Assembly: GCF_040938485.1 (NCBI RefSeq)
Contig: NW_027271798.1
Location: 248,001 to 312,000, forward strand
Direction: 5' to 3'
Source: Diadema antillarum
Taxonomy: Eukaryota
Length of the DNA: 64,000 bases
The notes below the pieces were generated by a model that was not told where the DNA came from, searched no databases, and was given only the letters and a program-made list of their open reading frames with translations. Both the position numbers and the translations under genes were made by a program. Of the stretch, positions 12,159-64,000 are shown one piece after another (the stretch's first letter is position 1; every line of letters begins with the position of its first letter).

Positions 12159-12735
12159 TTAAAGGACAAGTTCACCTTCATAAACATAAGGATTGAGAGA
12201 ATGCAACAATAATAGTAGAACACATCAGTGAAAGTTTGAGGAAAATTGGACAATCGATGCAAAAGTTATGAATTTTTAGAATTTTTGCGTTGGAACCGCT
12301 GGATGAGGAGACTACTACAGCTTGTGAGTCATATGCGTACAACAGTATAAAGAAAATGTAAAAGAAAATTCAACATATTTTCACTTTTTTCGCATAATAA
12401 AAGAGCACTTGACTTGCCTCTTTCTAAAGGCGGGGGGAACAATATTACCCATAACATTTGTCGGTAACGAGTCAGGGGAATGTGTACTTTTTTCAAAAGA
12501 TGGAATTTTGTGAAATTCTCTTTATATTTTCCTTGTATTGTTGTACGCATGTGACATCTAAGTTATACATACACTGCAGTAGTCTTCTCATCCAGCGGTT
12601 ACTGCACAAAAACTTCAAAAATTCATAACTTTTGAACGGATTGTCTGATTTTCCTCAAACTTTCACTGATGTGTTCTACTAATATTTCTACATTCTCTCA
12701 ATCCTTATGTTTATGAAGGTGAACTTGTCCTTTAA
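12159..12735. mobile_element. TTAA-flanked MITE (piggyBac-type target), family B copy 1
   Basis: TIR ttaaaggacaagttcaccttcataaacataaggattgagagaatg / matching inverted end; about 570-bp homolog at 45700-46264. Confidence 0.9.
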
Positions 12736-15700
12736 CCTTCTTCCCCCCCCCCCCCCCCATGTACAGTATGCATGAAGGCTTTCATTCAGTCATATATCAC
12801 AAATACAAATTACCTCAAAGATAATAATGTTTTCAAATCAACTTGTAGCATCAAAGGAGGAGCTAGAACAATGTATATCAGTCTAGAACTATTTTTATGA
12901 TAACAGTTGAATGCCAGCTGGTCAGGGAACTTATGCTATGGGGACCTTTACTGTAGGAATTCCTGTTTTGTTATGTAATTGAAACCACTTTTGTTTGTCC
13001 TTAGAAGTTTACATGAAGGAGTCTTAGTTTGGGGGACATGTAATGACTACAAGTACATGTAGCATGCATCACAAAAACATCCATGAAGGAAGTGTTTCAT
13101 ATGAGAAAAAGCCAAATTATTGGCAGTTTAATAGTTTCATGGTAAATATTACTTGAGTACTTTATTGTCTGTTCAATCATTACTAAACTGAATGATTGTA
13201 ATGCAGATTTGTTCTTGTACTCCTGTACTGGTTTTGTATTAATTACTGATGCTTACATTTCGCTGTGTTTGTGCAATGTCAATCTTTCAGTAGGGTTCTT
13301 CATCCTGTCAAGACCTGAGCAATACATCATACATTCTATTGTATGAATGCACTGCCTGTTGTTCAAGCATCAACTGACGAATGCAGTGATCATATATTGT
13401 ATAGAGGACTGCCAAGGCTCGGGGTAGAACACGTGCAACTGAAATATTGCATCTACTTCCTGATTGAAATCCCCTCTGCCCATAGCAGGTTCACATGCTT
13501 TGTGCACTGCAGACCTTGTGTATCATAGACTATATTAGCTGGTACCATGTTAGTATAGCTGTAAATCCACACTAGAATATTAGCCATTTATCATTCATGT
13601 TGTGATAAGAAGGTGAAGATTTACTGCAGACAGTATGTGAAGGCCATGAACTATAAAATCTTTATAAAAGGTACTAGTAGTAATGTCAAATACAGAATTA
13701 CTCTGTATAGCATGAATGCTGCACAAGAAAAGTGAGATAAAATTTTTGAGCAAATGAGACAAAATAGATATGTACCAAATATGCATGTTACATGTACAAT
13801 CTGTAGTTGCTGTTACTCTGTCATATAGCATCCCACTCATCTGTGTTGTTTATTTGTTTGTTTGGTTTTCTTTTTTCATACATGACAAGTAAGGTACACT
13901 CCACCCCTCTCTTCTTCTTTCATGGAAAATGACTGCACTGATGCTACTTACTATTTTCATGAATCTCCCTGCTTTGGCTTGTGACGACTTCTGTTTAGAT
14001 AATTGTTCACTCACAGCTATGGGCTATTTTTAACTTATTTGTATAACACTCGGTTTACAAGTACAGGCAGCTACGTGCAGTAATGTGTAAGGATAGTCTC
14101 AAAGTGCAATTAGGGTGCAAGGTAATTTACACATAAATACTGGTATGTCTCCCCCCCCCCCCCCCCCCCCCCCCCCCAAAGCAACAGAAAAGGTATTGCA
14201 AAACTTTGCTTTCCTGTCATGGTAATATTAAGTATTAAAGGTCCAGTTTACCTTTGGGAGCAGTGATTTACAAAAATATTCAAGATATTACATTTGATGC
14301 ATATGTGTAGGTATGTTGTATCACAAAACATCCTACATCCTACATTCGCAATAAAGCCTTAAAAGGAGATAATCAGTATTTTTCTGAATAAACCATAACT
14401 GTAGACGGTTTATTCTGAAAGCATTCTTATTATAACTATTGTTCAGTTTTTGTGTATTTAACAATACTTCACATCGATTATACGGATTCTAATTTTTATA
14501 GTGGATTTTTCTATCCCTAACTCACATTCTAGAACTATTTTAAAACATTAATGGTGGGTTTTTGTTTTATCTGCAAATGGTAAATTATGCCTTTGAGACA
14601 AATGGCATCATTTGATCAGTTGTTCAAGAAATGTTTTTTACCCTCAAAATTCACATGACGATAAGTTCTGGCAATTTAGAATTGTCCATTCATTAACAGA
14701 CAAAACTGAATTCTGCCAGTTCCCCCCCCCCCCCCCTTACTTGTGTAGTAAACAACTGTACATGATCTTCAGGATTTCTTGTTTTATTTCAGATTTTTTT
14801 TTTTCATTTTCTATTTTGCATGGTTGTAAATATGAGAATGTGCATACATGATCGCTTATTTCGACACAGTTTTGCCAGTTTCTGTTATGATTGTCTATAT
14901 CAACTGTACCAGAGGCTTTGAGGTTTTATTTACTGTGTTTGAAGAGATTATTATATGAGTAGGAACCTCACCTGCAAGTCAAAATGTTGTTCGTGCTGGA
15001 AAAAAAATAACTGCCTTCGTAGGATAAGGTAAAGCATAGCATCCTGATGATCGTAATTGATGTTCTTTGGAGGCCAAGCTCTGTTTATTATGAGTGACCA
15101 CCTGTAGAATGAGTCATAGTACACTCATGTTTTCATGTGACTGTCTTTAAAGAAGACATCAGTTTATCATAAGTGCAGGTATGATATTGACATGATAAAC
15201 ATGATGAAGAGCAAATCGTGTAAGATCTTGTGCTGACATTGGTAGTTCTCTTATCTGCAATGTAGTTACACTCATAATTACTGATATCAAGATCCATATA
15301 GTTTGATCCAGGGTTAGATTGGCTGCATCAAAGTTTTGTTTTTGTGTTTGTGTACCGGTATGTGTAAGTGTGTGTGTGTGTGATATTTTATGTACAAAGG
15401 TCGGTGATGCACATGATTTGCAATACGTATTAAAAATTGCTAAATCAACTTTTAAAAGCGAACATTATGTAGTTACTATCCTTGACACAAATTATGTAAA
15501 ATGTCTAAATATTACATGAAAGTGCACAAAATATAAGACTCAAAAGTAGGGCTAATTTATCATACCTGATTCTCAGAATTATTGCTGGTTAGACAAAACA
15601 TCTGGAATTGTATCCAAATTCCTTCAGGATATGAAATTGACGAGATTTTCTGTAGAGTTAGTAGAGGAGAAACAAGCCTGCAGTCCTTTATATACATGCA

Positions 15701-20915: not shown

Positions 20916-21477
20916 TTAAAGGGATGGTATAGCATTGGTTGAAATGAGGATTCAGCTTTTAATGTTTAGCGAGATATTTAGAAACCTCCCTATGAAATGT
21001 TAAAGAGCATACAATTCTAAGGGGAATTTAAGGTTTATTTGATGAAAATTGGTTTTGAAATGACTGAGATATCCCAAAACAAGGTAAAACAAAGCAATCC
21101 TAATAAAAGTCGTGGCCTGTCACAGTTTATTAGGGTTGCCTCGTTGGGGGTCTAGGGCAATTACACCCTGGGCAATTACCCCAGATCCTTCCCCTGGCCC
21201 TAATCCTAATCCTAATCCTAATCCTGAACCTAATCCTAACCCTAACCCAAACTCCTAACCCTAAACCTAACCCTAATCTTTATTCTAACTTTACCACTAA
21301 CCAGTATTTAGCCGGGGGGGGGGGGGGGGGGGGATTGCCCTCTGGGGGTAATTGCCCGGATACGCTCATTGGATATGTCTGCCATTTCAAGACCAAGTTT
21401 CATCAAATAAACTTTGAATTTCTCTAAGAATTACATGTTCTTTCATATTTCATAAGGGGTTTTGCTTTATCTCACAA

Positions 21478-22002: not shown

Positions 22003-22948
22003 CCCTGTCTCCTACTTGCCTGAATTGGCTTTCAAGAAATGCTACTGTACTTTTAAGAGCGAAGTGTCCTTTGAAATCATTTGCCTTGCAGTGAGTTTTA
22101 ATTACCCAAGGCAAAGGGGAGAGTGTATAATGTTGTAGTCTTCAGTTGCTGGCTCTTTGTAAAGTGATACTGCTACATTTGTAGTTTTGTGTGAAATGTG
22201 CCTGTGTACCAGTATGTGGAATGAAGGCTGATGTGTTTGTTAGTAGCTTCAAGAGCAATGAATTTCTACTGGTTCCTGTTAAATGTTTTTGATTGACAAG
22301 AGTAGATATAAAGGTTTTGGGCTGACCTCTGGGATCATGTCAACATGAAGACATTATAAACCTTGAGTATGAAGACAGTTGTGCCATGAAAAAAAAAATG
22401 CTGACAAAAGCATCAACTTTCAAGTAAAAAGAAAAAACAACACAACAATAAATGCTAGTCCTTAATAAATGTGTTTTAGCTTGTTAAACTTTTTGTGTCA
22501 CAACTTGTAAATCTATTTTGCAATTTCACACAATTCGTACTTCATAGAATTTTTCATTTTCACTCAAGACAAATTGTGGACTTTTAATCTTGAAATAGAT
22601 ATTTGTTACCTGATACTGTACAAGTACTGTATAATATATTACCGGATACATTCCACTACGCATTATATTTGACACAATGAATTCTATGTATTATACATAG
22701 CAATTATCTCACGACAGTTTCTGTACAGTTAATGATCATATAGGCCTATTGCTTGACTTCAAAATTGTCTATATACTTTTCCTTCCTCCTGGTTATCTTT
22801 CAGTATTAAAAACAACGTTAAAATCTTAGTAACAGGAAAGAATGTGCTTATATTTGAGAAAGTGCAAATCAGCCACTGGTTCCCATGGGAAATGATCTTT
22901 GCACGCTACAGTAACATGAGCATAAACATCTGTAGGGTTTTGTCTCTA

Positions 22949-25030
22949 GGGCAAGTCCAAGATAACGCGCACGTTACGTATGGGACATTCAGAGACTTTT
23001 ATGACCTGAAAAATAGTGTTAATGGCCTTTGATCATATTGAACTTCATCATGGTGATTGATATCTAGGAGAAGTATAATCATGTAAAAAATTGAGAAAAA
23101 TTACCTTGACAATTATATTCTAGAAGAGAAAATATGTGCCGTTACGTATGGGACCAGAAAAATTTTGTTTTTTTGAACATTTTTTTCAACCTCAAAACTC
23201 TCTGAAAGTATATCATTCTACAACTTGTAACTCACTGTGATGAAAGTCACAACACTCAAGATTATCACAGGTAAGTTTCATGTCATTAGGCAAAAAGCTC
23301 TAATTACAGGTTCTAATTAAAGACAGACATGACGCGTTACGTATGGGACAGTTACGTATGGGACAGTTTGTCCCCCATTCATTTAGTGTGTGAAGAACCA
23401 TGTTTATGGGTATTTTGCATAATTATTGAAGTAAAATCAGTTGAAACTACTCAAATACTGATCCAGATTGTCAAGGAAACAATATTCCCTAAATATTCAC
23501 CATCATAATCATATTCAATCATATTTTTATATATTTATGACCAACCTGGGTATGCATGCCCTTTGTCCCCCATTCGTTTAGTGTGTGGAGAACCATGTTT
23601 ATGGGTATTTTGCAAAATAATTTTGCAAAATACCCATAAACAAATTTTTGCATAATTATTGAGGTGGAATCAGTTGAAATTACTCAAATACTGATCCAGA
23701 TTGACAAGGGAACAATATTCCCCAGATATTTACCATCATAATCACATTTAATCATATTCTATATTTTTATGACCAACCTTTAGTATGTATGCCCTATTTT
23801 TATCAGGATAGTTACAACTGAAAAATTGAATAGTTTAAAGTGTTTACTTCCTATGATGAAGGGCAGTTTGCCATTCAGTTTCAATAAAAATCAACTTGAC
23901 ACAAGAAATATCAAGTTTAATAAATAAGCAATACCTGCTGCATGGAACCCCAGTGATCGAGTAGATTATGATGTCTGTCTAGCAGTCAGGTCATTGATTC
24001 GAGTCACACCTCAGTATGTATACCCATGAATTTTGTTGTGGCTACTATTGAAAACTGAATAAGGACAATTTGTGTATCACTTGCAATAAATAAAAAAATC
24101 ATTTTACTTTATTTTTTTTTACGACCATTTCAAATTCGAACTCCATACATAAACTTTGAATTCCTCTAGTCTTACGATTGTATGCTCTTAAGTAATTCAT
24201 ATAATTGGTTTCCAATCATCTCATTAAATGTTGAAAACTGAATCCTCATTTCTACAAAAAACTATACCATCCCTTTAATGCTGATTTTTCATTGTGTATT
24301 TTGCCATTTTCCCCTCCCCCTTTCTGAAAATTGTTCAGTCAAGTTCATGTATTGTTTAAAGTGTCTATAACTCAAAAAGTAGCTACAATGTTGGGATGCT
24401 TTCTTCAGGATGATTGACCATATGTGTACTGAGAGACCTTCCCAGCTAGCTACATGCATTCACATGCAATATGTATGAGGATGTCCCATACGTAACGCAT
24501 TTGTCCCATACGCAACATTATTTCAATGCCTAATAAAAAATGTTTCTTTTACTTTTTTTTTCTTTTTTCTCTGGTATTTAATTTCTCTAAACAATAAATT
24601 AGAACTTTCCAAAAGGGCATTAAAATAACCTTAGCAATTTTAGAAAAAACCTAAAAAAATGACCTCATTTTGTTACGTATGGGACATCTCATGATAGGAC
24701 ACGAGCTAATTTGCATAATCATTTGCATAATCCCTAAATTTTCATACCAAGTTAAACTATGTGATGAACTTCTTATGTCCACATATAAATCAAATATCAT
24801 TTGCTTTCCTTTGAATTAATATGAATTTTTATAAATGTCCCATACGTAACGCTGTGTTTCACATTTATGCAAATGAAGCCCTTGAAATTTGCATAAATTT
24901 ACATAATATCATTTTTTCCTCCATGGAAATCAAAACTTCAACTCATAAGCTTCAAAATGATACCAAACATGTCAATATTGATCGAAGATGAAATTTTGCC
25001 TTCTGAGGGGACCTTATCTTGGACTTGCCC
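22949..25030. mobile_element. 2.1-kb non-autonomous DNA transposon, Sola2-like termini
   Basis: perfect 17-bp TIR gggcaagtccaagataa; TCTA duplicated on both sides; repeated gttacgtatgggac motif, inverted at the right end; no transposase ORF. Confidence 0.8.
24120..24278. mobile_element. right arm of MITE family A nested in the 22949-25030 element
   Basis: ends actataccatccctttaa, homologous to the 36.4-36.55 kb arm. Confidence 0.7.
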
Positions 25031-25171
25031 TCTAAAGCTAAATATATGAATGCAATGATTCAAAGGACTTGCGACATCACAGGCACGGTACAACATGATG
25101 GAAATACTGCATATTTTGCAAAGGGATGAATGATATTCATAAGAACATGTAATGAATATAGGTCAGGAAAC

Positions 25172-25340
25172 NNNNNNNNNNNNNNNNNNNNNNNNNNNNN
25201 NNNNNNNNNNNNNNNNNNNNNNNNNNNNNNNNNNNNNNNNNNNNNNNNNNNNNNNNNNNNNNNNNNNNNNNNNNNNNNNNNNNNNNNNNNNNNNNNNNNN
25301 NNNNNNNNNNNNNNNNNNNNNNNNNNNNNNNNNNNNNNNN
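25172..25340. other. assembly gap (169 N)
   Basis: run of n. Confidence 1.
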
Positions 25341-25656
25341 AACCCATGATAGTAGAATAGCAGTACATAAAGCAGTGGTACTACATGTAGTCTCAGCTGC
25401 ATTATGCACAGTTGTAGGTTCATCCATGGAAGAACAGGAAAGGCAATGCTTGCTACTGGCACACCTGAGGCACAGAATACAGACGCCTCCCTTCACCTCA
25501 GCCAAGGCCTACAGGCAGTAAACCAGAACCACCCCATAGCTAATGAAGGGCATGCAAGGACTATGATGCCTACTTCCATGGAATTTGAATACCTCAGATC
25601 ACTGGTAGAAGCCTTGTTACACTTGATATGTAGGGCTTAAAGAGTAAATAGATCAG

Positions 25657-36158: not shown

Positions 36159-36549
36159 TTAAAGGGATAGTACAGTATTGGTGGAGATGAGAATTGAGCT
36201 TTTAACTTTTTTGCGAGATACCAAGAAAATACTTATGGTATAGTACAGGGCATACCATTTTAAGAGGAATTCAAAGCTAATTTGATGAAAATCGGGTTTG
36301 GAATGACTGAAACAGCCAAAAACAAAGTAAAACAAAGCAATCGTAATAAAGTGTGGGTCCCACACTTTATTAGAATCGCCCTTTTTGGGATATCTCAGCC
36401 ATTTCCAAACCAATTTTCATCAAATAAACGTTGAATTCCTCATAAAAAGACACGCTCTTTCATATTTCATAAGAAGTTTCTCATTATCTAACCAAAGAAT
36501 GTTAGAAACCTGAAATTAGGTCTCAACCAAAACTATACGATCCCTTTAA
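36159..36549. mobile_element. complete TTAA-flanked MITE family A
   Basis: ttaaagggat...atccctttaa ends; long inverted arms around central palindrome aataaagtgtgggtcccacactttatt. Confidence 0.92.
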
Positions 36550-42671: not shown

Positions 42672-44715
42672 ATTGCAATCGCTCTTCGTCCGACGTCCGG
42701 CGTGCATCGTGCGTCGTGCGTAAACTTTTACATTTTCATCTTCTTCTTGAGAACCCCTGGACCGATTTTCACCAAACTTGGCAGGTAGCATCCCTAGGGG
42801 GATAGGATTTCAATTTGTTCAAGTGGGCACCATACCCCACCTGGGGGGCCCCCAGAGGGGCCCAAACCCCCCAAAATTAAGGAATCTTAAAAAATCTTCT
42901 TCTCTAGAACCAGAAGTGATAGAGCTAAGTTTATACTATGAATTAGTACATTGATGACTGTAGTTTCAAGTTTGTTCATGGCGGAATCAGGGGTGCCCCC
43001 TTGGGACCCAGGGGAGGGGGGTGGGGAGGGGTCCTAATGGGGCCCAAATTGTACATTTTCATCTTTTTCTTGAAAATGCCATGATGAATTTTCACCAAAG
43101 TTGGCAGGTAGCATCCCTAGGGGGAAAGAATCTCATTACCATCAAATGGGCACTATGCCCCACCTGGGGGCCCCAGGGGGCCTAAATTTGGACCGAAATT
43201 GTAAATTTTCATCATTTTCTTGAAAACCCTATCACCAATTTTCACCAAACTTGGCAGGTAGCATCCCTAGGGGGATAGAATCTCAATTCCATCAAATGGG
43301 CATCATGCCCCACCTGGGGGGCCCCAGGGGTCCCACCCCCCTCCTGTCAGGAATCTTTACAGATTTTCTCTAGAACTGGAAGTGATTGAGCTACATATAC
43401 TGTAAGTTAACCCTAACTAGACCGGCTATTTAGGTAGCTGATCGAGCCGGGGGGGGGGGGCCTCCCAGGCCCCCCCCCTCCAGATCTCGGCCGTCGACCG
43501 TGCGATTGCGACGAAAATTGGCACACACATTGCCTATGATGTAATCTAAAATACCTTGAAGTTAATTTTTCAAAAAATTATCATTTATGCTAAATTATGC
43601 TAATTTATGCATAATGATGCATGAAATCAGACTATTTGGTATAAATCACAAAATAAAGCTCAAAACAGGCACAATTTTTGTGTTGGTATTCTTTTTAGTG
43701 TCCTTAGCAAATGTAATTAAAAAAAATTGTGATATCAGAAAAAATTCTTAAGTATTTTATTGTTTTTTGCATTTCTTATGTATTTCTCTGTTTTTTCAAC
43801 TTTATGTTTTTCATTGTTTTTTCGATGAAATTTGTCTGCGACATTGCTTCGAACAAGAAAATATGTTATTCATTGATTTTAATCAATAAAACACCAAAAT
43901 AATCATGCTTTTATGAAATTTGCCTGTAAGCACAGTTTGCATTGAAATTGTACACGAATTCACGTTTTTGAGCAATATTTGGTCTGACATGCATGTACAT
44001 ATTTATGCGTAACTTCTGAACCGCGCGCCCGGGCGTCGCAAATTTGGTGTCAAAAGATGCGGGAGACTTGAAAGAAAAAAGTCATGAAATGTTGCGGCGA
44101 TAGCTTTTTGCGATTGCGATACATCGCGCAGAACGTCGAGGGGGGAGGCCCCCCCGCCTAGTTAGGGTTAATACAATGAGTCAGTGTATTGATGACTGTT
44201 GTTTCAAGTTTGTTCATGGGAGAATCGGGGTGCCCCCCCACCCCCTTGGAACCCAAGGAAGCGGGATGGGATGGGGGTGTCCAAATGCGGGCCTAAATTT
44301 TCATCTTCTTGCTGAAAACAACATAATGGATTTTCACCAAACTCGTCAAGTAGCATTCCCATAGGAATAAGATCTCAAAGTGTTTGAATGGGCACCAGGC
44401 TTTCCTTGGGGGCCCCAGGGGTCCAAACCTCCTAAATTAATGAATATTAAATAATATTTTTCTCTAGTTCTTATCAGAAGTGATAGGGCTTTAAGACTTT
44501 TTTCCCAAGCTGCATAATCCAACATTCTATAAAGTACAGTGTACTTGGCAGGTATTTTTACCAGTGTGATGGAATATGTAAATGGACACCATGCCCCCAT
44601 TCTCAAAGCTACCCCCACCACAAGTTTCCAATGTTCTCAGGTAAGAGTCTGCAAGAATGCACGGTAGGTGAACTTGCGATACTCAGGTGAGCGTGTGACC
44701 CCCGGGTCTCTTGTT
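42641..44715 (+). mobile_element. non-autonomous Helentron (HINE-like) with tandem core repeats
   Basis: T-run insertion site; subterminal inverted repeats agctcacctgag / ctcaggtgagc; 3' hairpin gacccccgggtc then tcttgttt; four core repeats containing ttttcatc(t)tt...accaaacttggcaggtagcatccctaggggg. Confidence 0.85.
43411..44167. mobile_element. piggyBac-type MITE nested in the Helentron element
   Basis: TTAA|CCCTAACTAG...CTAGTTAGGG|TTAA; CCCT/AGGG termini with TTAA TSD. Confidence 0.92.
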
Positions 44716-56500: not shown

Positions 56501-56581
56501 GTTTTTGTAAGAGACAGTGATATAAAATGACTTGATTGGATGATGTTTTACCTGCTGATGATTTGTTTGTTTGTTCTCTAG

Positions 56582-56659
56582 GCCTCCATCACCATGGCAT
56601 CTTCCGACTACCAGGCTCTCATCTGGAGATCAATGACATGAAGGAGCAGTTTGAGAGGG
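56582..56659 (+). CDS. SRGAP: srGAP RhoGAP exon with arginine finger (GLHHHGIFRLPGSHLEINDMKEQFERG)
   Basis: ctctag acceptor, GG|gtaggt donor, 78 nt, phase 1-1; GIFR catalytic Arg codon CGA at 56605-56607 is intact. Confidence 0.96.
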
Positions 56660-58145
56660 GTAGGTCTTACCTCATAGCTGATTACTAGCTAAAGACACAA
56701 TAGATCTGTTTGATGTCATTTCTCTGCATAGAAGTGAACGGCCACGCCAAGTCCAGGAAAATCTCACTGACACAAACCCACGCACACACATACTGTCACA
56801 TACACTGACATAAAAAGGAAATCACAGAATTTCCTTCCATTTCAAAACGGTTTGAATGAAGATGTCATATCTCTGATAATATCTTCTTTTATGAAGAAAA
56901 AAAAACAAGCAGATATGCTGTGAAAGCTGTTTATGTATGGACAAACTTTGTAACGGTCATTAATTTTAACAGTGTTATTCTTCTTCCAAGAGCATAGGTA
57001 AAAAATGTTTAAGTACAGATTTGCCTAATTGTGCATGTCCTCATGGTAGAGACTGCAGTCTTCTTCGGAATCTTCTTCTTCGACAAAGTACAGGCCACAA
57101 TATGGTGTATCAGTGTACCACATTAGATTTGCACACAACATACTGTACTCATCATCACACTGCTATGTATGTGTCCATGCAAACTTATCGAATAACTTGA
57201 ACACATTACACTTACCTTTATGCTTAGTTCCTGTCCAAGCATTTCATACAGAATAGTCAACATTTTTCTTTGAAAGAATCTTGTGCTGTCTAAATTTCTT
57301 AGTGGTTTAAAGACAACAGAAGTTGTATTAAATGTACATTCCTTCCCTTGCGTAGAACCTTCATCCTGAATCATTATCTTGAACATTCTATTAGTTTTTA
57401 CACATGCACTCCTCAGTTATTGATACATGTATGTTACATGTATGATCCTGGAGGTTAATGTTATTATACACTTCACCCTATGGAGAGAGGAACACATCAT
57501 CTTTATTTATTTGGGGGGGGGGGGGTGATTAAATAACAGCTACCATGTTTTAACCTTCCTTGAGCATATATATTCAGTATCTGCCTCCACCCCCCCCCCC
57601 CCAAAAAAAAAAAAACCAACAACAACAACAACCTACTATCAGTATACTGCACATATAAAGTCTCTGCAGAAAATGTGCATTGAGTTGATTATAGTGTAAG
57701 CTCTCAGATTGTGCAGTTTCATATCTTATTAAAAAAACAACAACAACAATGAACACTCATAGTTTGCAGAATATTCATGGCATGATGCAGTGTGTACATT
57801 TCATCTTATGCCTCCTGACAACTGCCAGAGCATGTAATGTGGATGATACTATAGCCACACAAATTGATGTGTGATTGATCATGAGCCTGTTTTCTGTGCC
57901 ACTTGATGGGACTAATGAGTGGGAGAGTGAAACCAACACCCATTCTACGAAATCTTTTGGTTTCCTTTTCGTAAGGCAGCAGACAATCCTGGACAATGCC
58001 AAAGTGTTTTTTTTTTTAAAGTGTATTTTGTCACAGAAGCGTAGCGAACTTGCAACTGTAGGACGCTAGAAAGTTGAACAGGAAATCTGATAAGTGGCCA
58101 GTAGTTAGTGTAGATAGTGTTTCATGATGAAAAGGATTAGGGTTG

Positions 58146-59001
58146 TTTTTATGTCTCCTTCATGAAGTGGCGCTGGATGCATAATGTTGTGGGTTGTCCA
58201 TCTGTGCATCCGTAATCAGTTTGTGGAGGACGTAACTTGAGAACAGTTTCAGGTAGTCAAACGAAACTTGGCTTATGTATGTAAGAATGAAAGAAGTTGT
58301 ACCCATTGAAATGGGCGTATATGCTCAAGGTCAAAAGTCAAGGTCAGATGCTAAAATTTCACTGTGTTCCTCATATCTCTACAATGCTTGAATTCATTTT
58401 AATGAAACTTAGTGTATACATGTACAGACGTGGATTCTTCATGGAAAGTTTTGGGACATAAGGTCAAATGTCACATAAAAATGCTAAAATTTCACTTCTT
58501 TCCTCCATATCTTGAAAATGGCTTAAAGTATCTTCATGAAACTTTGTGCTTCTATGTGTATTGCCTGACATTGATTCTCTTTGGAAGTTCTTGGGTCAGA
58601 GATCAAAGGTCAAGGGTCAGTGGTCAAGTTGAAATGGTGAAAATCTTATGCTGAAATTGCACAGTTTTCTCCATACCTTTAATAGAAATCATTGAATGTA
58701 CTTTATACACTTGCATTTGTAGGAGGTATACAATTTGTAAATGCATTGTCACACAGGGATTATGCAGGGAAAATTTTAGACTGTGAGGTCAAAAGTGAAA
58801 ATACTAAAATTTCACTTGTTTTCCATATTTTGAAAATGGCTCAAAGTATTGTCTTGAAAATCGGTGTATGATTACCGAATAATGATTATCTGGCCATCAT
58901 GTGAAATTGTTGTCTCACATTGGCAATATTTACTGTTGACCTCTTGTGAGAATAATGTGATATGGCGGAGGCATACCAGTTGCCATAGTGACATTTCTAT
59001 T
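58146..59001 (+). mobile_element. HINE-like non-autonomous Helentron
   Basis: ttttatgtctcc 5' end, ggcggaggcata...ttctattt 3' end, tandem ggtcaa core repeats. Confidence 0.65.
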
Positions 59002-59183
59002 TATTTATTTTTTGTTCTTTCTTTCCAGAGGTGGTCTCACTGACAATATTAAAGGAAGTTGATATTTCACAAACTAATGTGTCTTTACATGAGGGTGTAA
59101 TTAGTGCTGTGGGCTGCAGTTTGCTGGGAGTGAGATAATTATCTTTGTTTGTTTTTCTATGTCGTTGTGTGTGCTATATCCAG

Positions 59184-59318
59184 GCAAAGACCCAATCTAT
59201 GGCCTGGGTGAGGAAGGAGATGTAAATGTGGTGGCCAGTGTGCTCAAGGCCTACTTCAGAGAGCTTCCTGAACCACTCTTCCCTAAGGACAAGTTTGACA
59301 AGTTCATGGATTGCATCA
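59184..59318 (+). CDS. SRGAP: srGAP RhoGAP exon (GKDPIYGLGEEGDVNVVASVLKAYFRELPEPLFPKDKFDKFMDCI)
   Basis: atccag acceptor, CA|gtaaga donor, 135 nt, phase 1-1; DVxxVASVLKxYFRELPEPL motif. Confidence 0.96.
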
Positions 59319-59916
59319 GTAAGAATTACTAGTCGTGACACACATCAAAAGTAAACACATGACATACATGTGTGTCAACTACTTTAGAGATATGCAGAAA
59401 GAATGTTGTAATGTCAAGACAATTCTAAGGGTATAATATCTTTGTGGTAGAATAGAGAATTTACACAGATTCACCATTATATCAACCATTAGTTTTAGAA
59501 TAAATAGTGGTGTTGGGTGTTGAAACTTCACTTCTCTCCCGTTTTATGTACCTATTGGTGAAGTTTGTGATTGTAAAAGTCATGGCTCCATCAACAAGGC
59601 AAGCACCGGACGTGTAGTGGAGGAAACAATCAAACAAACACCTTTCTGTAACATTCTCTCTTAGATTTGTGTCGGTTTTACCATTAGTGTACGCTTAGTG
59701 TCGTTGGACATGAAAGAACATATAGTACTCCTTTCTGCATTAAGCAAGGTCTCTCTTCCATGTTATTTTAATAGGAAATACACATGGTAGAGTGTTTTTA
59801 CAGTTCACTGTAACAATAGTGTGTGTTCTAAGCATTTGTTGGCAGCAGCCGTAAATCATCATGAGTATGTTGTTCCAGTGTGTCCATGGAGATTGTCTGT
59901 GATTCCATTATGACAG

Positions 59917-59942
59917 ATCTACCACCAGGCAGGGAGAGGATG
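59917..59942 (+). CDS. SRGAP: 5' remnant of the expected RhoGAP exon (NLPPGRERM), truncated and fused to a MITE half
   Basis: tgacag acceptor with correct phase 1; (N)LPPGRER aligns position-for-position with vertebrate KLENPAER / RIDNLYER; sequence switches to MITE at about 59942; no LP...MRYLFAFL part found in 59319-61576. Confidence 0.6.
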
Positions 59943-60127
59943 GTCCCAACTTTTATTAGGACAACTTTGTTTTATTATATCTCAGCCATTTTAAAACCAA
60001 TTTTCATCAAAGTAAACTTTTAATTCTAGAATGAGTATGCTCTTTGATATTTCATATAAGTGCTTCTAATTATGTCACAAAGCATTAAAACCTGAATCCC
60101 TATCTCAACCAAAACTAATCCCTTTAA
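59942..60127. mobile_element. right half only of MITE family A, starting at the central palindrome
   Basis: ggtcccaacttttattagg...aaaactaatccctttaa is collinear with 36357-36549; left arm absent. Confidence 0.85.
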
Positions 60128-60130
60128 TCA

Positions 60131-60326
60131 TACAGTGCACTCCCATTATAACAGACATGGTTCTAATGAAATTCTCGTTACAATGAAGTAAAAATTGAGT
60201 TCCCAAAAGTATCATCTTTATATCTTTATATACTTTACTGTTGGGCTGTAGCAAAATTTCGATATAACGAAAGAAAACTGCTCGTGCCGAGGACATACAG
60301 CTGTAGCTATAATGGGAGTGACCTGT
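60131..60326. mobile_element. TA-MITE family D, second copy
   Basis: tacagtgcactcccattataac / gctataatgggagtgacctgt. Confidence 0.8.
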
Positions 60327-60550
60327 GCATGCAAGCCATGTGACATCATCTACACTCTGGGACTTAAGTGGGGGACATGTATTCTTAACAAGTCTTGCTG
60401 CTAGGGATTGTGATTTATATGGAATGAATTCTATTGTACAAAGTAGAATAGACTATTCTCTCTGATAGTAGAAATCCACATTGTCAAATAATTACGAAGG
60501 ATTCACAGAAGAGAGAAGTAATATGTATTATAAAATGGGTTCAAGAATGT

Positions 60551-61103
60551 AGCCAATAGGAAGCGCTGAAATGAGTCACGTGTGCTTTGGTTATTCTAGT
60601 CCCATCGCACTGCGTGTTAAATCCTATTGCCGATCGTCTGCGCGCGGCGGCTCCTTTGAATTGCATGCATACAGTACGCGCTGTCAATCCTGTAAACAAC
60701 TTCTAGTTCGGGCTGCGGGCCGGCTGGCCTTTCTTCCCTTGTGCATAACATGTGTGGCGAACGTATACTCTTATACGTACACTTTGTACAGTACAGTAGA
60801 CCAAGCGTTGTGGGACCAGATGCGTACATGGAGTCACTTTGAAGGGCAAATCCAGCGATTTAACAGGTTAATTCTCACGCCGTCTTCAGAGTATGTTGTC
60901 TAGTAGGCCTATATGAGGAGTCTATATCAAGTCTTTAAGGTAAAGGGTGCATATTCTATGTAACATAAGTAAGTTTTCATGCGGGAACTTAAGTGTCCGG
61001 AAACCCAACCCCCCATCATACTTATACTGTATGTGCGGGATTTCCGAGCGTGACGTGTGTAAATGTTTGGGACGAACATCTTCGGACGTCTTGACCCACA
61101 AAG
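60551..61103 (+). promoter_or_regulatory. intronic CpG-rich island with CCAAT, AP-1 and E-box motifs (possible internal promoter)
   Basis: agccaatagg, tgagtca and cacgtg clustered at 60551-60582; CpG-rich through about 61140; AAG|gtacga donor at 61104. Confidence 0.4.
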
Positions 61104-61156
61104 GTACGAGAAAAACGCTGAAAAATGCTGTTAGTTTTCGAATTTTCGACCCATTT

Positions 61157-61341
61157 TATAAAACAAATGATGCACAGTATTATTTCGTGGCGTTAGTGGA
61201 GGCGTAGCTCACTCTCGGGTATTTACAATGTAGTGCAACATGCACTCGGCTTCGCCTCAAGCATGTTTCACAATTGTAAATACCCTCGAGTGCGCTATAC
61301 GCCTCCACTAACGCACTCTATCCTGTGCATCATTTGTATAA
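61157..61341. mobile_element. palindromic MITE
   Basis: arms caaatgatgcacag / ctgtgcatcatttg and gcgttagtggaggcgta / tacgcctccactaacgc around ctcggcttcgcctc. Confidence 0.8.
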
Positions 61342-61576
61342 GATAACAGGACAGCTCACATTGAGAGTACGCTAAGCCTTTATTGTAAAATTGTGGTTTA
61401 TTGCTTTGTTTTGATTAGTCAGACAAGTGTATCTGTAGGCAACCAGAAGCAAGAAAATATTACATGTAGTGCTGCTGACCAATAAAAGTAGCAGGGCAAG
61501 AGTTAGCATTAGTGCCAGAGCTATGTATTGCTAGTGTGAGAAGAGTCCCTGAATTTCCTGCTTCTTGTTTTGCCAG

Positions 61577-61789
61577 ACTGTCTCAGTACAGTGATGAACA
61601 CATGATGGACACACACAACCTTGCCCTCTGCTTTGGGCCCACCCTCATCAGACCACCAGATGGCTACGACGAGGTTGCCTACCAGGGTAACATCAATGAC
61701 CTCGTGGAGACCATGATCCTCTTCCAGAATGAGATCTTCCCTTCAGAGCCGGGTCCACTCTTCCAGATGGAGAACAATGCAGACCTGAG
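61577..61789 (+). CDS. SRGAP: srGAP RhoGAP C-terminal exon (LSQYSDEHMMDTHNLALCFGPTLIRPP...LFQNEIFPSEPGPLFQMENNADL)
   Basis: ttttgccag acceptor, AG|gtatgt donor, 213 nt, phase 2-2; NxMxxxNLAxCFGPTL-type motif. Confidence 0.96.
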
Positions 61790-62520
61790 GTATGTTTGCT
61801 GAGCATTTCCAAGGCATGCATACTGACTGCAGTCAAGGCACATTACTGATGATTGCTCAGTAGCCTCAATCAGATGAGTGTGTTGGATAGGGAATGATTC
61901 AACTGTAAAAATGTATTGTTTGCTTATTAGGCTACTGAAGCTTTAAGTTTCTAGAATAAAGAAGATTGATACATGAGTATTACTAGTAAAAGTACAAGTG
62001 CATATGAATGCCCAAATGCATATTGAAATTTGGTTAACCCATTATATACCCCCACAATCAAAAGTCACATATTGAGTGTATATTTGCAGCTTTCAGCAGT
62101 TATTGCTATGTGGAACAACTCAATAGTGATAGTGATACATTTGGATGCTGTGATTTGTCAATCTGAAGGCAGCCTTGACTCAGTTTTTTGTCGTTCTTTT
62201 ATTCATAGCCTTGTTTTTTTAAACAGATTGAGGTTGTTTTTAAATTTCTAGAGTATGTATTTCTGGAGTACTTGCAAAAAACTTTCAACAGTAGTGATCA
62301 TGGTTTGTTACTAATATAAAGACTTATGACTGTAGTGATCATAGTGACACTGCAGCATATTCTGCTAATGCTTATTTTACAACTACTGATATTACTGCTG
62401 CTGACGTAATGAAATCACATATTGTAATGTGTGAGTAACAGTTTTCATTGACGTTCATCTCACAGTAGGGTACTTATTAGTCTTAATGTCCAGTCATTTT
62501 GTTCCCCATTTTGATCATAG

Positions 62521-62585
62521 TCCAACAGGCAGCCTGGAAACAATACCAGAATCAGTGATTGATGAGACAGACAGCACCAATGATA
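62521..62585 (+). CDS. SRGAP: srGAP exon in GAP-SH3 linker (SPTGSLETIPESVIDETDSTND)
   Basis: catag acceptor, A|gtaagt donor, 65 nt, phase 2-1, open frame; acidic linker as expected before the SH3 exon. Confidence 0.78.
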
Positions 62586-64000
62586 GTAAGTTCCATCCCA
62601 CTCCAAAGTCTGCTTTTATTGTCTTCTGAATGGTCATGCAAATGGTTACTTCAGTATGATTCAAATGTTGTGGAAAACTAAGGATGTAATTTTCTGTATG
62701 CATGACGTCGCTGGGGTGATAAGACCTCGTATCTACAAAATGTCAAATGTTCAGGAGAGTAAAAAAACATGGCGGCCAAAGCACTATAGTGAATGGGATA
62801 GCCTTTCCTTTGACATGCCGTGGTGGCTTCATTTTTTAAGTAAGACAGTTGGGATTTGGACAGGACATCACTTAACCAATTATTTGACTATTAATCTAAG
62901 AAAGTCATTTTCATCAAAATTGCAGATACAAGGTCTTATCACCCCAGCGACGATAAATATCTTTTACAGTCAACCTTGCTTATCCTTAAATATCCAAACC
63001 TCATTAGAAATGCTATTTGCAGACTGCAGCTTCTCACTGTTCATAACGCCCCAATATTATACCAAGCATTGGAGGGTGAGGAGAAGACATTAGAAGGGTA
63101 AAATGCTGGGAGTGAATAACACAAGCACACAGGACTGTGCTGTCAAATGTTTAGCTTTACAAAAGTACTTGGCGGTTAAAATACAACTAAGTGCTAAAAC
63201 AATAGAGTGGAAAACTTGTTCATTCTCTTTTCATTCTTCTATTGTGGCACTTCACTTTTGTGAAAACAATGCTACTTGCAAAATATTAGTTTCATCTGTG
63301 GACATAGAGAAAGTTGCACTGCAAAATTTTCTTTAAGTGTTTGCTTGCCAATTGCAATTTTAGTCAGTCAGTTTATGATTCGGATGTTGCAATCACACAT
63401 AACTATCATGTTAATATTACAAATAAAATGAAAGCAAATTATAGATATATTCAATAGGATAGCGTAAAGAGTGAAAGGCTGCATCCTGTTGAGGGTTCAT
63501 GTAGATGAGTGACTAAATCGTCATGTCCCTCCAGGATGTTTATAGAAATAATATTGATTGAAACAAAAAGCTGCAGGATTTTTGGCAACCTGACAGCAGG
63601 TTCAATTGAGTGTATGTGTGCAGGATTCTAACACATTCTCTCTGATTCTTGTAATCCTAACAGATTTTAAGTACTGGTATGTACCAGAATAATGGTTTAA
63701 AAATAATTTAGTGGTATATGAAATGATTTTAGTAACATCTGGTTGTATAGAAGATGAGATAATTCAAACTGATAATAACAGTAGCAAAGGAGTTTGTGTA
63801 TTAATGAGTGAAATATGATCTGTAAAAAAGCAGCTGTGTTACTAACTGTAGACTGATGCCAGGAAATGTGGATACACTGTACGTTGTTCAGTGCTTTCTA
63901 TTAGGGAGCTTTTATAGATTTTTGCGACTTGGACGAACAGAGGAAAAACCTGTTTTGGGCATGCTCAAATTTTCTAGTGAAAATCGACCTGGCATCATCC

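Follow-up and report, generated by a model that had tools for sequence, protein, structure and literature searches.

A deletion ending at the apex of a palindromic MITE truncates a RhoGAP exon in a probable srGAP allele of the sea urchin Diadema antillarum

The window analysed here, a 64,000-nt stretch of Diadema antillarum DNA, carries on its + strand most of a sea-urchin srGAP gene, encoding residues ~81-708 as judged by tblastn. When a 71-residue exon query was compared with the full protein library, one protein was 100% identical over the matched stretch: P0001 (XP_072181747.1, 882 aa), the "SLIT-ROBO Rho GTPase-activating protein 3-like" of Diadema setosum. The 90% cluster to which it belongs includes three proteins of D. 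antillarum: P0151, of 882 aa and located on a 2.86-Mb contig of GCA_040938485.1; P0153, an isoform of P0151; and P0152 (XP_071508429.1), of 883 aa and located on another contig of that assembly, 387,685 bp long. For comparison with the window, we used the P0151 locus on contig JBFRCO010000019.1 (L002), treated as the other D. antillarum haplotype, and the D. setosum locus (L001). Pfam matches in both P0151 and P0152 follow the domain order of an srGAP, with FCH at 29-111, RhoGAP at 495-643 and SH3 at 714-756. The gene looks single-copy, judging by a single locus in D. setosum and one per haplotype in D. antillarum; the latter two are listed by RefSeq as separate genes (XP_071495197.1 and XP_071508429.1).

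Within the RhoGAP domain, the arginine-finger block GIFRxxG is intact in the window (GLHHHGIFRLPGSH, encoded at 56566-56664). The srGAP signature ...MRYLFAFL..LSQYSDENMMD.., found in the intact allele and in three distant srGAPs (P0003, P0005 and P0012), is represented in the window by its second half only, LSQYSDEHMMD. The two RhoGAP exons on either side of the gap (Table 1) match solved RhoGAP domains and leave 35-36 domain residues uncovered between them, corresponding to ARHGAP15 chain positions 121-156 and p50RhoGAP 107-141. The upstream exon ends on a first codon base (...FMDCI + A), while the downstream exon starts on a third (A + LSQYSDEHMMD...). As the original prediction had held, they are out of phase, and a direct junction would run into a stop after nine codons, so that the transcript needs an intervening exon of 3k+1 bases (~106 nt).

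The sole candidate for this exon between the flanking exons is a 25-nt stub behind an intact acceptor at 59916/59917, tgacag/ATCTACCACCAGGCAGGGAGAGGAT (tgacag/ATCTACC...; here and below, a slash marks a splice site or junction). In P0001 and P0151, the flanking exons are separated by ...FMDCI NLPPGRERIDQLRDMVSQLPTSVMILMRYLFAFLKK LSQYSDEH..., and the intact exon, in L002 as in D. setosum L001, encodes NLPPGRER followed by IDQLRDMVSQLPTSVMILMRYLFAFLKK. Since the intact proteins begin the exon with NLPPGRER, the stub is the true exon start, as had been proposed from its resemblance to one, and 28 codons are absent from the window. The exon size of about 106 nt, originally given for vertebrate srGAPs, is exact in L002, where the exon spans 106 nt (85344-85449) between the acceptor ...acaacag/ and the donor /gtgagt. 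The deletion removes 28 of the 36 residues between the LKxYFRELPEPL and NLAxxFGPTL blocks, a segment corresponding to beta2-chimaerin 381-411 and ARHGAP15 chain positions 121-156, and the window does not encode a complete GAP helical core. The deleted segment aligns with central helices of solved RhoGAP domains, and LP...I.VMRYLFAFL is unchanged in the three distant srGAPs.

Table 1. Features of the window at and around the broken RhoGAP exon, with the related MITE copies.
Feature	Position	Strand	Remarks
Full palindromic copy, same MITE family; another small element nested beside its centre	20916..21454	.	
Full palindromic copy, same MITE family	36159..36549	.	
RhoGAP exon KDPIYGLGEEGD...LKAYFRELPEPLFPKDKFDKFMDCI	59184..59318	+	Matches RhoGAP structures; P0001/P0151 residues 535-579
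Stub of the 106-nt RhoGAP exon, 25 nt, (N)LPPGRER	59917..59941	+	Same 25 nt open L002 exon 85344-85449
Deletion junction 59941/59942 with GAT microhomology (59939-59941)	59939..59942	.	L002 85369-85748 absent
Surviving MITE apex and right arm, left arm gone	59942..60127	.	99% identical to L002 right arm; 86% to reverse complement of L002 left arm
Stop on stub read-through into the MITE	60021..60023	+	Path D
ATTAAA inside the MITE arm, possible intronic poly(A) signal (candidate)	60084..60089	+	60 nt after path D stop
13-nt micro-exon (SMLS + A) of the XP_071508429.1 model	60890..60902	+	Keeps frame; path matches P0152
Intron read as coding in the RefSeq model, weak acceptor 61506/61507	61507..61576	+	
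Next genuine RhoGAP exon LSQYSDEHMMDTHNLALCFGPTLIRPPDG...	61577..61790	+	

In megablast alignments, the window and L002 were collinear over 59 kb at 98-99.6% identity. Around the stub, window 58001-59941 corresponds to L002 83408-85368 and window 59942-63000 to L002 85749-88811; the two blocks overlap by 3 nt, and the 380 nt between them in L002 are absent from the window as one clean deletion, the sole difference at the site. The lost piece comprises 81 nt of the exon, the splice donor with 105 nt of intron, and a 194-nt MITE left arm. The original prediction had proposed, from the window by itself, that a deletion took the 3' part of the exon, its donor and the MITE left arm and broke at the hairpin centre, and the comparison with L002 agrees with this base by base. 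In L002, the left flank of the missing piece reads ...GAGAGGAT/AGATCAG and the right flank ...AAAAGAT/GGGTCCC; across the junction, the window reads ...GAGAGGATGGTCCC. The right breakpoint falls at L002 85745-85750, 1-6 nt from the apex base of the hairpin (85751). By rough estimate, a right end placed uniformly in the ~1.9-kb intron would lie this near the apex ~0.7% of the time. The event thus has one breakpoint at the symmetry axis of a palindrome and an asymmetric loss, a combination expected of a centre-break deletion.

From 59942, the window continues as ggtcccaactttt..., and alignment with the full copies elsewhere in the window bore out the claim that the stub runs into a MITE centre (ggtccca...) whose left arm is missing. 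The undeleted element in L002 (85555-85933, ~380 bp) starts 105 bp into the intron after the 106-nt exon and is a palindrome centred at ~85744-85751, with 190-nt arms that are ~80% complementary. As single-stranded DNA it is predicted to fold into one long hairpin of -125.4 kcal/mol (shuffled mean -34.3; z = -20.6), with a loop of three bases, GTC, at 85750-85752. Thirteen loci of the family were found in 260 kb (three sequences), 11 of them full palindromes; the only clear solo arms were the window copy and its D. setosum orthologue. The element is highly repeated, with a summed k-mer depth of ~1e5 compared to ~6 in flanking unique DNA across three DNA runs, and an examination of its coding capacity revealed no ORF beyond chance. 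Its flanks read ...CTTTAC/AGGGAT and ATCCCT/TTAATC, in which a short TTA-like target-site duplication is possible. We also considered whether this palindrome is unusually spacer-free among the copies and dropped the idea, because arm ends from BLAST are imprecise and the copy at 36159-36549 is also centre-intact. Nested beside the centre of the copy at 20916-21454 lies another small element (window 21110-21370), whose ends are inverted (GGGCAATTACCCC... / ...GGGGTAATTGCCC); it also contains a run of poly-G and an array of degenerate telomere-like repeats, (CCTAA/CCCTAA)n.

In D. setosum, whose assembly was made by another group, the exon is intact (L001 78546-78653). The orthologous MITE there consists of the left arm only, at 79531-79720 (region 79531-79760), and is again broken at the apex: the junction reads ...AAAAGGTGG/CCCTTTAAT..., with CCC microhomology, and the right arm is gone to the last ~4 nt of the element, after which the right flank follows. 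This arrangement may represent a second, independent apex-anchored loss that removed the opposite arm; alternatively, the right arm may never have been present there. A loss is favoured by the composition of the family, with 11 of 13 loci being full palindromes and only two clear solo arms. Adjoining the left arm in L001 is a 772-nt element (78759-79530) that is 83% identical to window 43408-44167.

Two mechanisms can be proposed for the D. antillarum deletion. A palindromic MITE would fold into a hairpin or cruciform. Its tip might then be cut, the left end resected and the ends rejoined through the GAT microhomology, as in a center-break event; or replication might stall at the hairpin and the nascent strand switch template, guided by microhomology. 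Either route would leave a one-sided deletion anchored at the apex, with exon base 25 joined to the MITE apex, and the resulting allele would lack the 28 codons for the invariant LP...MRYLFAFL helices of the GAP core together with the splice donor. Tip cutting and template switching fit the deletion data equally well. 'Center-break' palindrome revision was reportedly described by Cunningham et al. in 2003 (Mol Cell Biol 23:8740). Cleavage of hairpins by Mre11-Rad50 / SbcCD is documented (PMC3315005), and human PATRR palindromes give rise to asymmetrically deleted alleles (PMC4255720). The present deletion resembles such centre-break deletions in its long near-perfect palindrome, its breakpoint at the symmetry centre, its asymmetric loss and its short microhomology. 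It differs in being a probable natural germ-line variant of an echinoderm, in which the palindrome is a MITE and the loss extends 186 bp past the element into an exon. As an event it adds one further case to a type already described and does not constitute a new kind of system.

We next asked what the window represents. The genome papers describe GCA_040938485.1 as a hifiasm assembly of a single male's sperm DNA that was left uncollapsed, with both haplotypes kept, and totals 1.75 Gb compared to a haploid size of ~703 Mb, with 84.4% duplicated BUSCOs and 2.52% heterozygosity. On these genome-wide statistics, two contigs 1-2% apart are expected to be alleles. We therefore think it probable that the window represents the other haplotype of the D. 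antillarum male that was sequenced and carries a heterozygous loss-of-function allele beside an intact copy. Structural differences between the haplotypes are frequent, with ten indels of at least 149 nt over the 59 kb compared (window 5341-64000), or about one per 6 kb. Excluding one that spans a run of N, eight indels other than the srGAP-exon deletion were examined, and four had clear terminal inverted repeats, in some cases together with target-site duplications, the hallmark of transposon insertion polymorphisms. The srGAP-exon deletion was the sole indel running from unique DNA to a palindrome apex, and the sole one of the ten in coding sequence. Examples of the other indels include a 594-nt palindromic element at 12159-12752 that is present only in the window, and terminal-inverted-repeat elements of 1338 nt and 760 nt present only in L002. 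The window's sole N run (25172-25340, 169 N) lies within 22948-25341, a segment for which the other haplotype gave no alignment at 93% identity or more.

The main competing explanation is that both chromosomes are intact and that the gap was introduced by hifiasm, RagTag, Racon or hairpin-affected reads. The original prediction had offered a loss-of-GAP allele and an assembly collapse as alternatives, and of these the present evidence favours the allele. Palindromes are a known source of sequencing trouble. For the assembly, at ~11x HiFi per haplotype, Nanopore reads from two further animals served for patching and short reads for polishing by Racon, and these steps could have created a false join. 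We searched 58900-62700 in the Logan contigs of three DNA runs and one probable RNA run. Among the contigs listed, in which the MITE and an 813-nt repeat predominate, none crosses 59941/59942, which is also what an artefact would give. An exact search for the junction in JGI metagenome contigs returned no matches, as expected. Run X1 contains a mix of window-like and L002-like variants, and its unique contig stops at 59910, just before a TG/CA difference between the haplotypes; this fits a branch at a heterozygous site and falls short of proof. Against an artefact, unique DNA outside the palindrome accounts for 186 nt of what was lost, and no more than 3 nt are shared at the junction, a pattern unlike either a fold-back collapse or a repeat-driven misjoin. 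Haplotype-specific variants also flank the deletion on both sides, neighbouring ones in the window being an A at 59778 and TG at 59911-59912, the HiFi consensus reaches QV 44.5, and the independent assembly of another species has what appears to be a second apex-anchored loss in the same element. Taken together, these observations make an assembly, patching or polishing error unlikely, although it is the most serious of the alternatives.

A recently duplicated paralogue on its way to becoming a pseudogene would also leave an intact and a broken copy on separate contigs. RefSeq annotates the two as separate genes, and the preprint of the genome paper argued for segmental duplication. However, the paper as published attributes the doubled content to the two haplotypes of a diploid. 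A single copy is present in D. setosum, and the 1-2% divergence between the contigs equals the reported heterozygosity. The broken copy also has no other coding lesion: 0 of 456 compared codons differ in nucleotides between P0151 and P0152, and beyond the affected segment the two protein sequences match at 100%. We consider a duplicate improbable, more so than an artefact. Due to the complete identity of these codons, synonymous differences cannot be used to date the break.

To gain insight into what a heterozygous loss-of-function allele of this kind could produce, we translated the possible transcripts. Skipping the stub (path A) would give ...FMDCI followed by NCLSTVMNT and a stop, for a product of 588 aa. 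Splicing the stub from a cryptic donor, ATG/gtccca at 59942/59943, to 61577 (path B) would give ...GRERM followed by TVSVQ and a stop (593 aa). Read-through into the MITE (path D) would add 27 foreign residues before a stop (614 aa); both this stop and the ATTAAA beginning at 60084 had been predicted and were confirmed. Transcripts with a stop well upstream of later exon junctions are subject to nonsense-mediated decay. The stops of paths A and B are so placed, and decay is the predicted outcome for both. These data suggest that the window most likely carries a null allele or one subject to nonsense-mediated decay, or at best one that yields a fragment with the F-BAR and part of the GAP domain.

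The only path that stays in frame (path C) joins 59917-59942 to 60890-60902 and then to 61507. Its translation is P0152 without any change, and from this match the window is taken to be, or to be identical to, the contig bearing the second RefSeq gene. In XP_071508429.1, the micro-exon and the intron read-through create a scrambled 29-residue GAP stretch, MSMLSTLVPELCIASVRRVPEFPASCFAR, outside of which (residues 588-615) P0152 and P0151 are 100% identical. Protein-homology-guided gene predictors tend to build frame-preserving paths of this sort. If the transcript were real, the allele would be functional and make a full-length protein with 29 unrelated residues in place of 28 from the GAP domain. 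The path is open and in frame and gives the RefSeq protein, and the Pfam RhoGAP match is retained, at 127.2 bits compared to 157.5 bits for the intact protein. The splice sites that it uses are poor by the general splice consensus: the donor is ATG/gtccca, and the acceptor, ...gcaagagttag/, is without a pyrimidine tract. Moreover, srGAPs do not vary in the segment that is replaced, which makes up core helices in solved RhoGAP domains, and the Logan contigs listed included neither a spliced one for path C nor any splice junction entering or leaving the stub. Path C thus appears to be a frame-preserving prediction rather than a genuine mRNA, and a functional allele is very improbable. Finally, there is hardly any chance that the real exon lies intact elsewhere in the intron or window and that the stub is a chance likeness, as the first 25 nt of the intact exon recur unchanged in the stub, and a three-frame translation of 59319-61576, a six-frame motif search and tblastn of the 64-kb window with the intact orthologue P0001 gave no trace of residues 588-615 or of any other remainder of the broken exon.

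A truncated srGAP with a biological role is already known. SRGAP2C is a fixed human duplicate, truncated within the F-BAR extension, that acts by binding SRGAP2A. The original prediction had likened the broken gene to SRGAP2C, and part of the likeness stands: both are srGAP copies predicted to be without GAP function that keep the dimerising F-BAR part. The site of the cut does not correspond: the urchin break lies inside the GAP domain and leaves the F-BAR complete, unlike the truncation of SRGAP2C. In addition, the urchin copy is most likely an allele and its stable product is hypothetical, which makes the analogy a loose one. The deletion also has features in common with the transposon-linked structural variants of highly heterozygous marine invertebrates: the indels that separate the two haplotypes here, at 2.52% heterozygosity, are mostly transposon insertions. 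It differs in being a deletion instead of an insertion. As a speculative extension, the intronic MITE could be a recurrent natural fragile site at which opposite arms have been lost independently at the apex. The allele might then use the ATTAAA of the MITE, escape nonsense-mediated decay and make a 614-residue protein of F-BAR and partial GAP that dimerises with the normal product, as a polymorphic modifier similar to SRGAP2C. We regard this whole scenario as a long shot.

If the heterozygous allele is real, the locus indicates that a hairpin-forming intronic transposon can destroy a neighbouring exon, with the alleles before and after the event available in one assembly. The mirror-image loss in D. 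setosum would open palindrome-apex breakage to study in an animal germ line, and together the two species provide a small lead on the fragility of palindromic MITEs. For comparative work, XP_071508429.1 appears to be an in-frame construct over a broken exon and ought not to be treated as a real paralogue or variant. D. antillarum is a keystone species that has suffered mass mortalities, and one candidate heterozygous loss-of-function variant is now documented in it.

Other features near the broken exon were also recorded. An insertion of ~825 nt at window 60526-61350 is shared by the two D. antillarum haplotypes (L002 86333-87145, 99.3%) and absent from the D. setosum intron. Its k-mer depth was 1e4-4e4, compared to ~6 in unique DNA, and joints from 61338 back to 60526 (back 813) occurred in all four runs, which indicates that the 813-nt unit also exists elsewhere in head-to-tail arrays or circles. 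The insertion includes a 54-nt inverted repeat (61190-61314), and Rfam and tRNA scans of the intron, with the insertion included, found no match. In run X3, guessed to be DNA, a contig of depth 92 skips 61788-62518 with GT..AG ends. It confirms the junction from 61787-61790 to 62519, and as a spliced contig it indicates that srGAP transcript is present and the gene is expressed in that sample.
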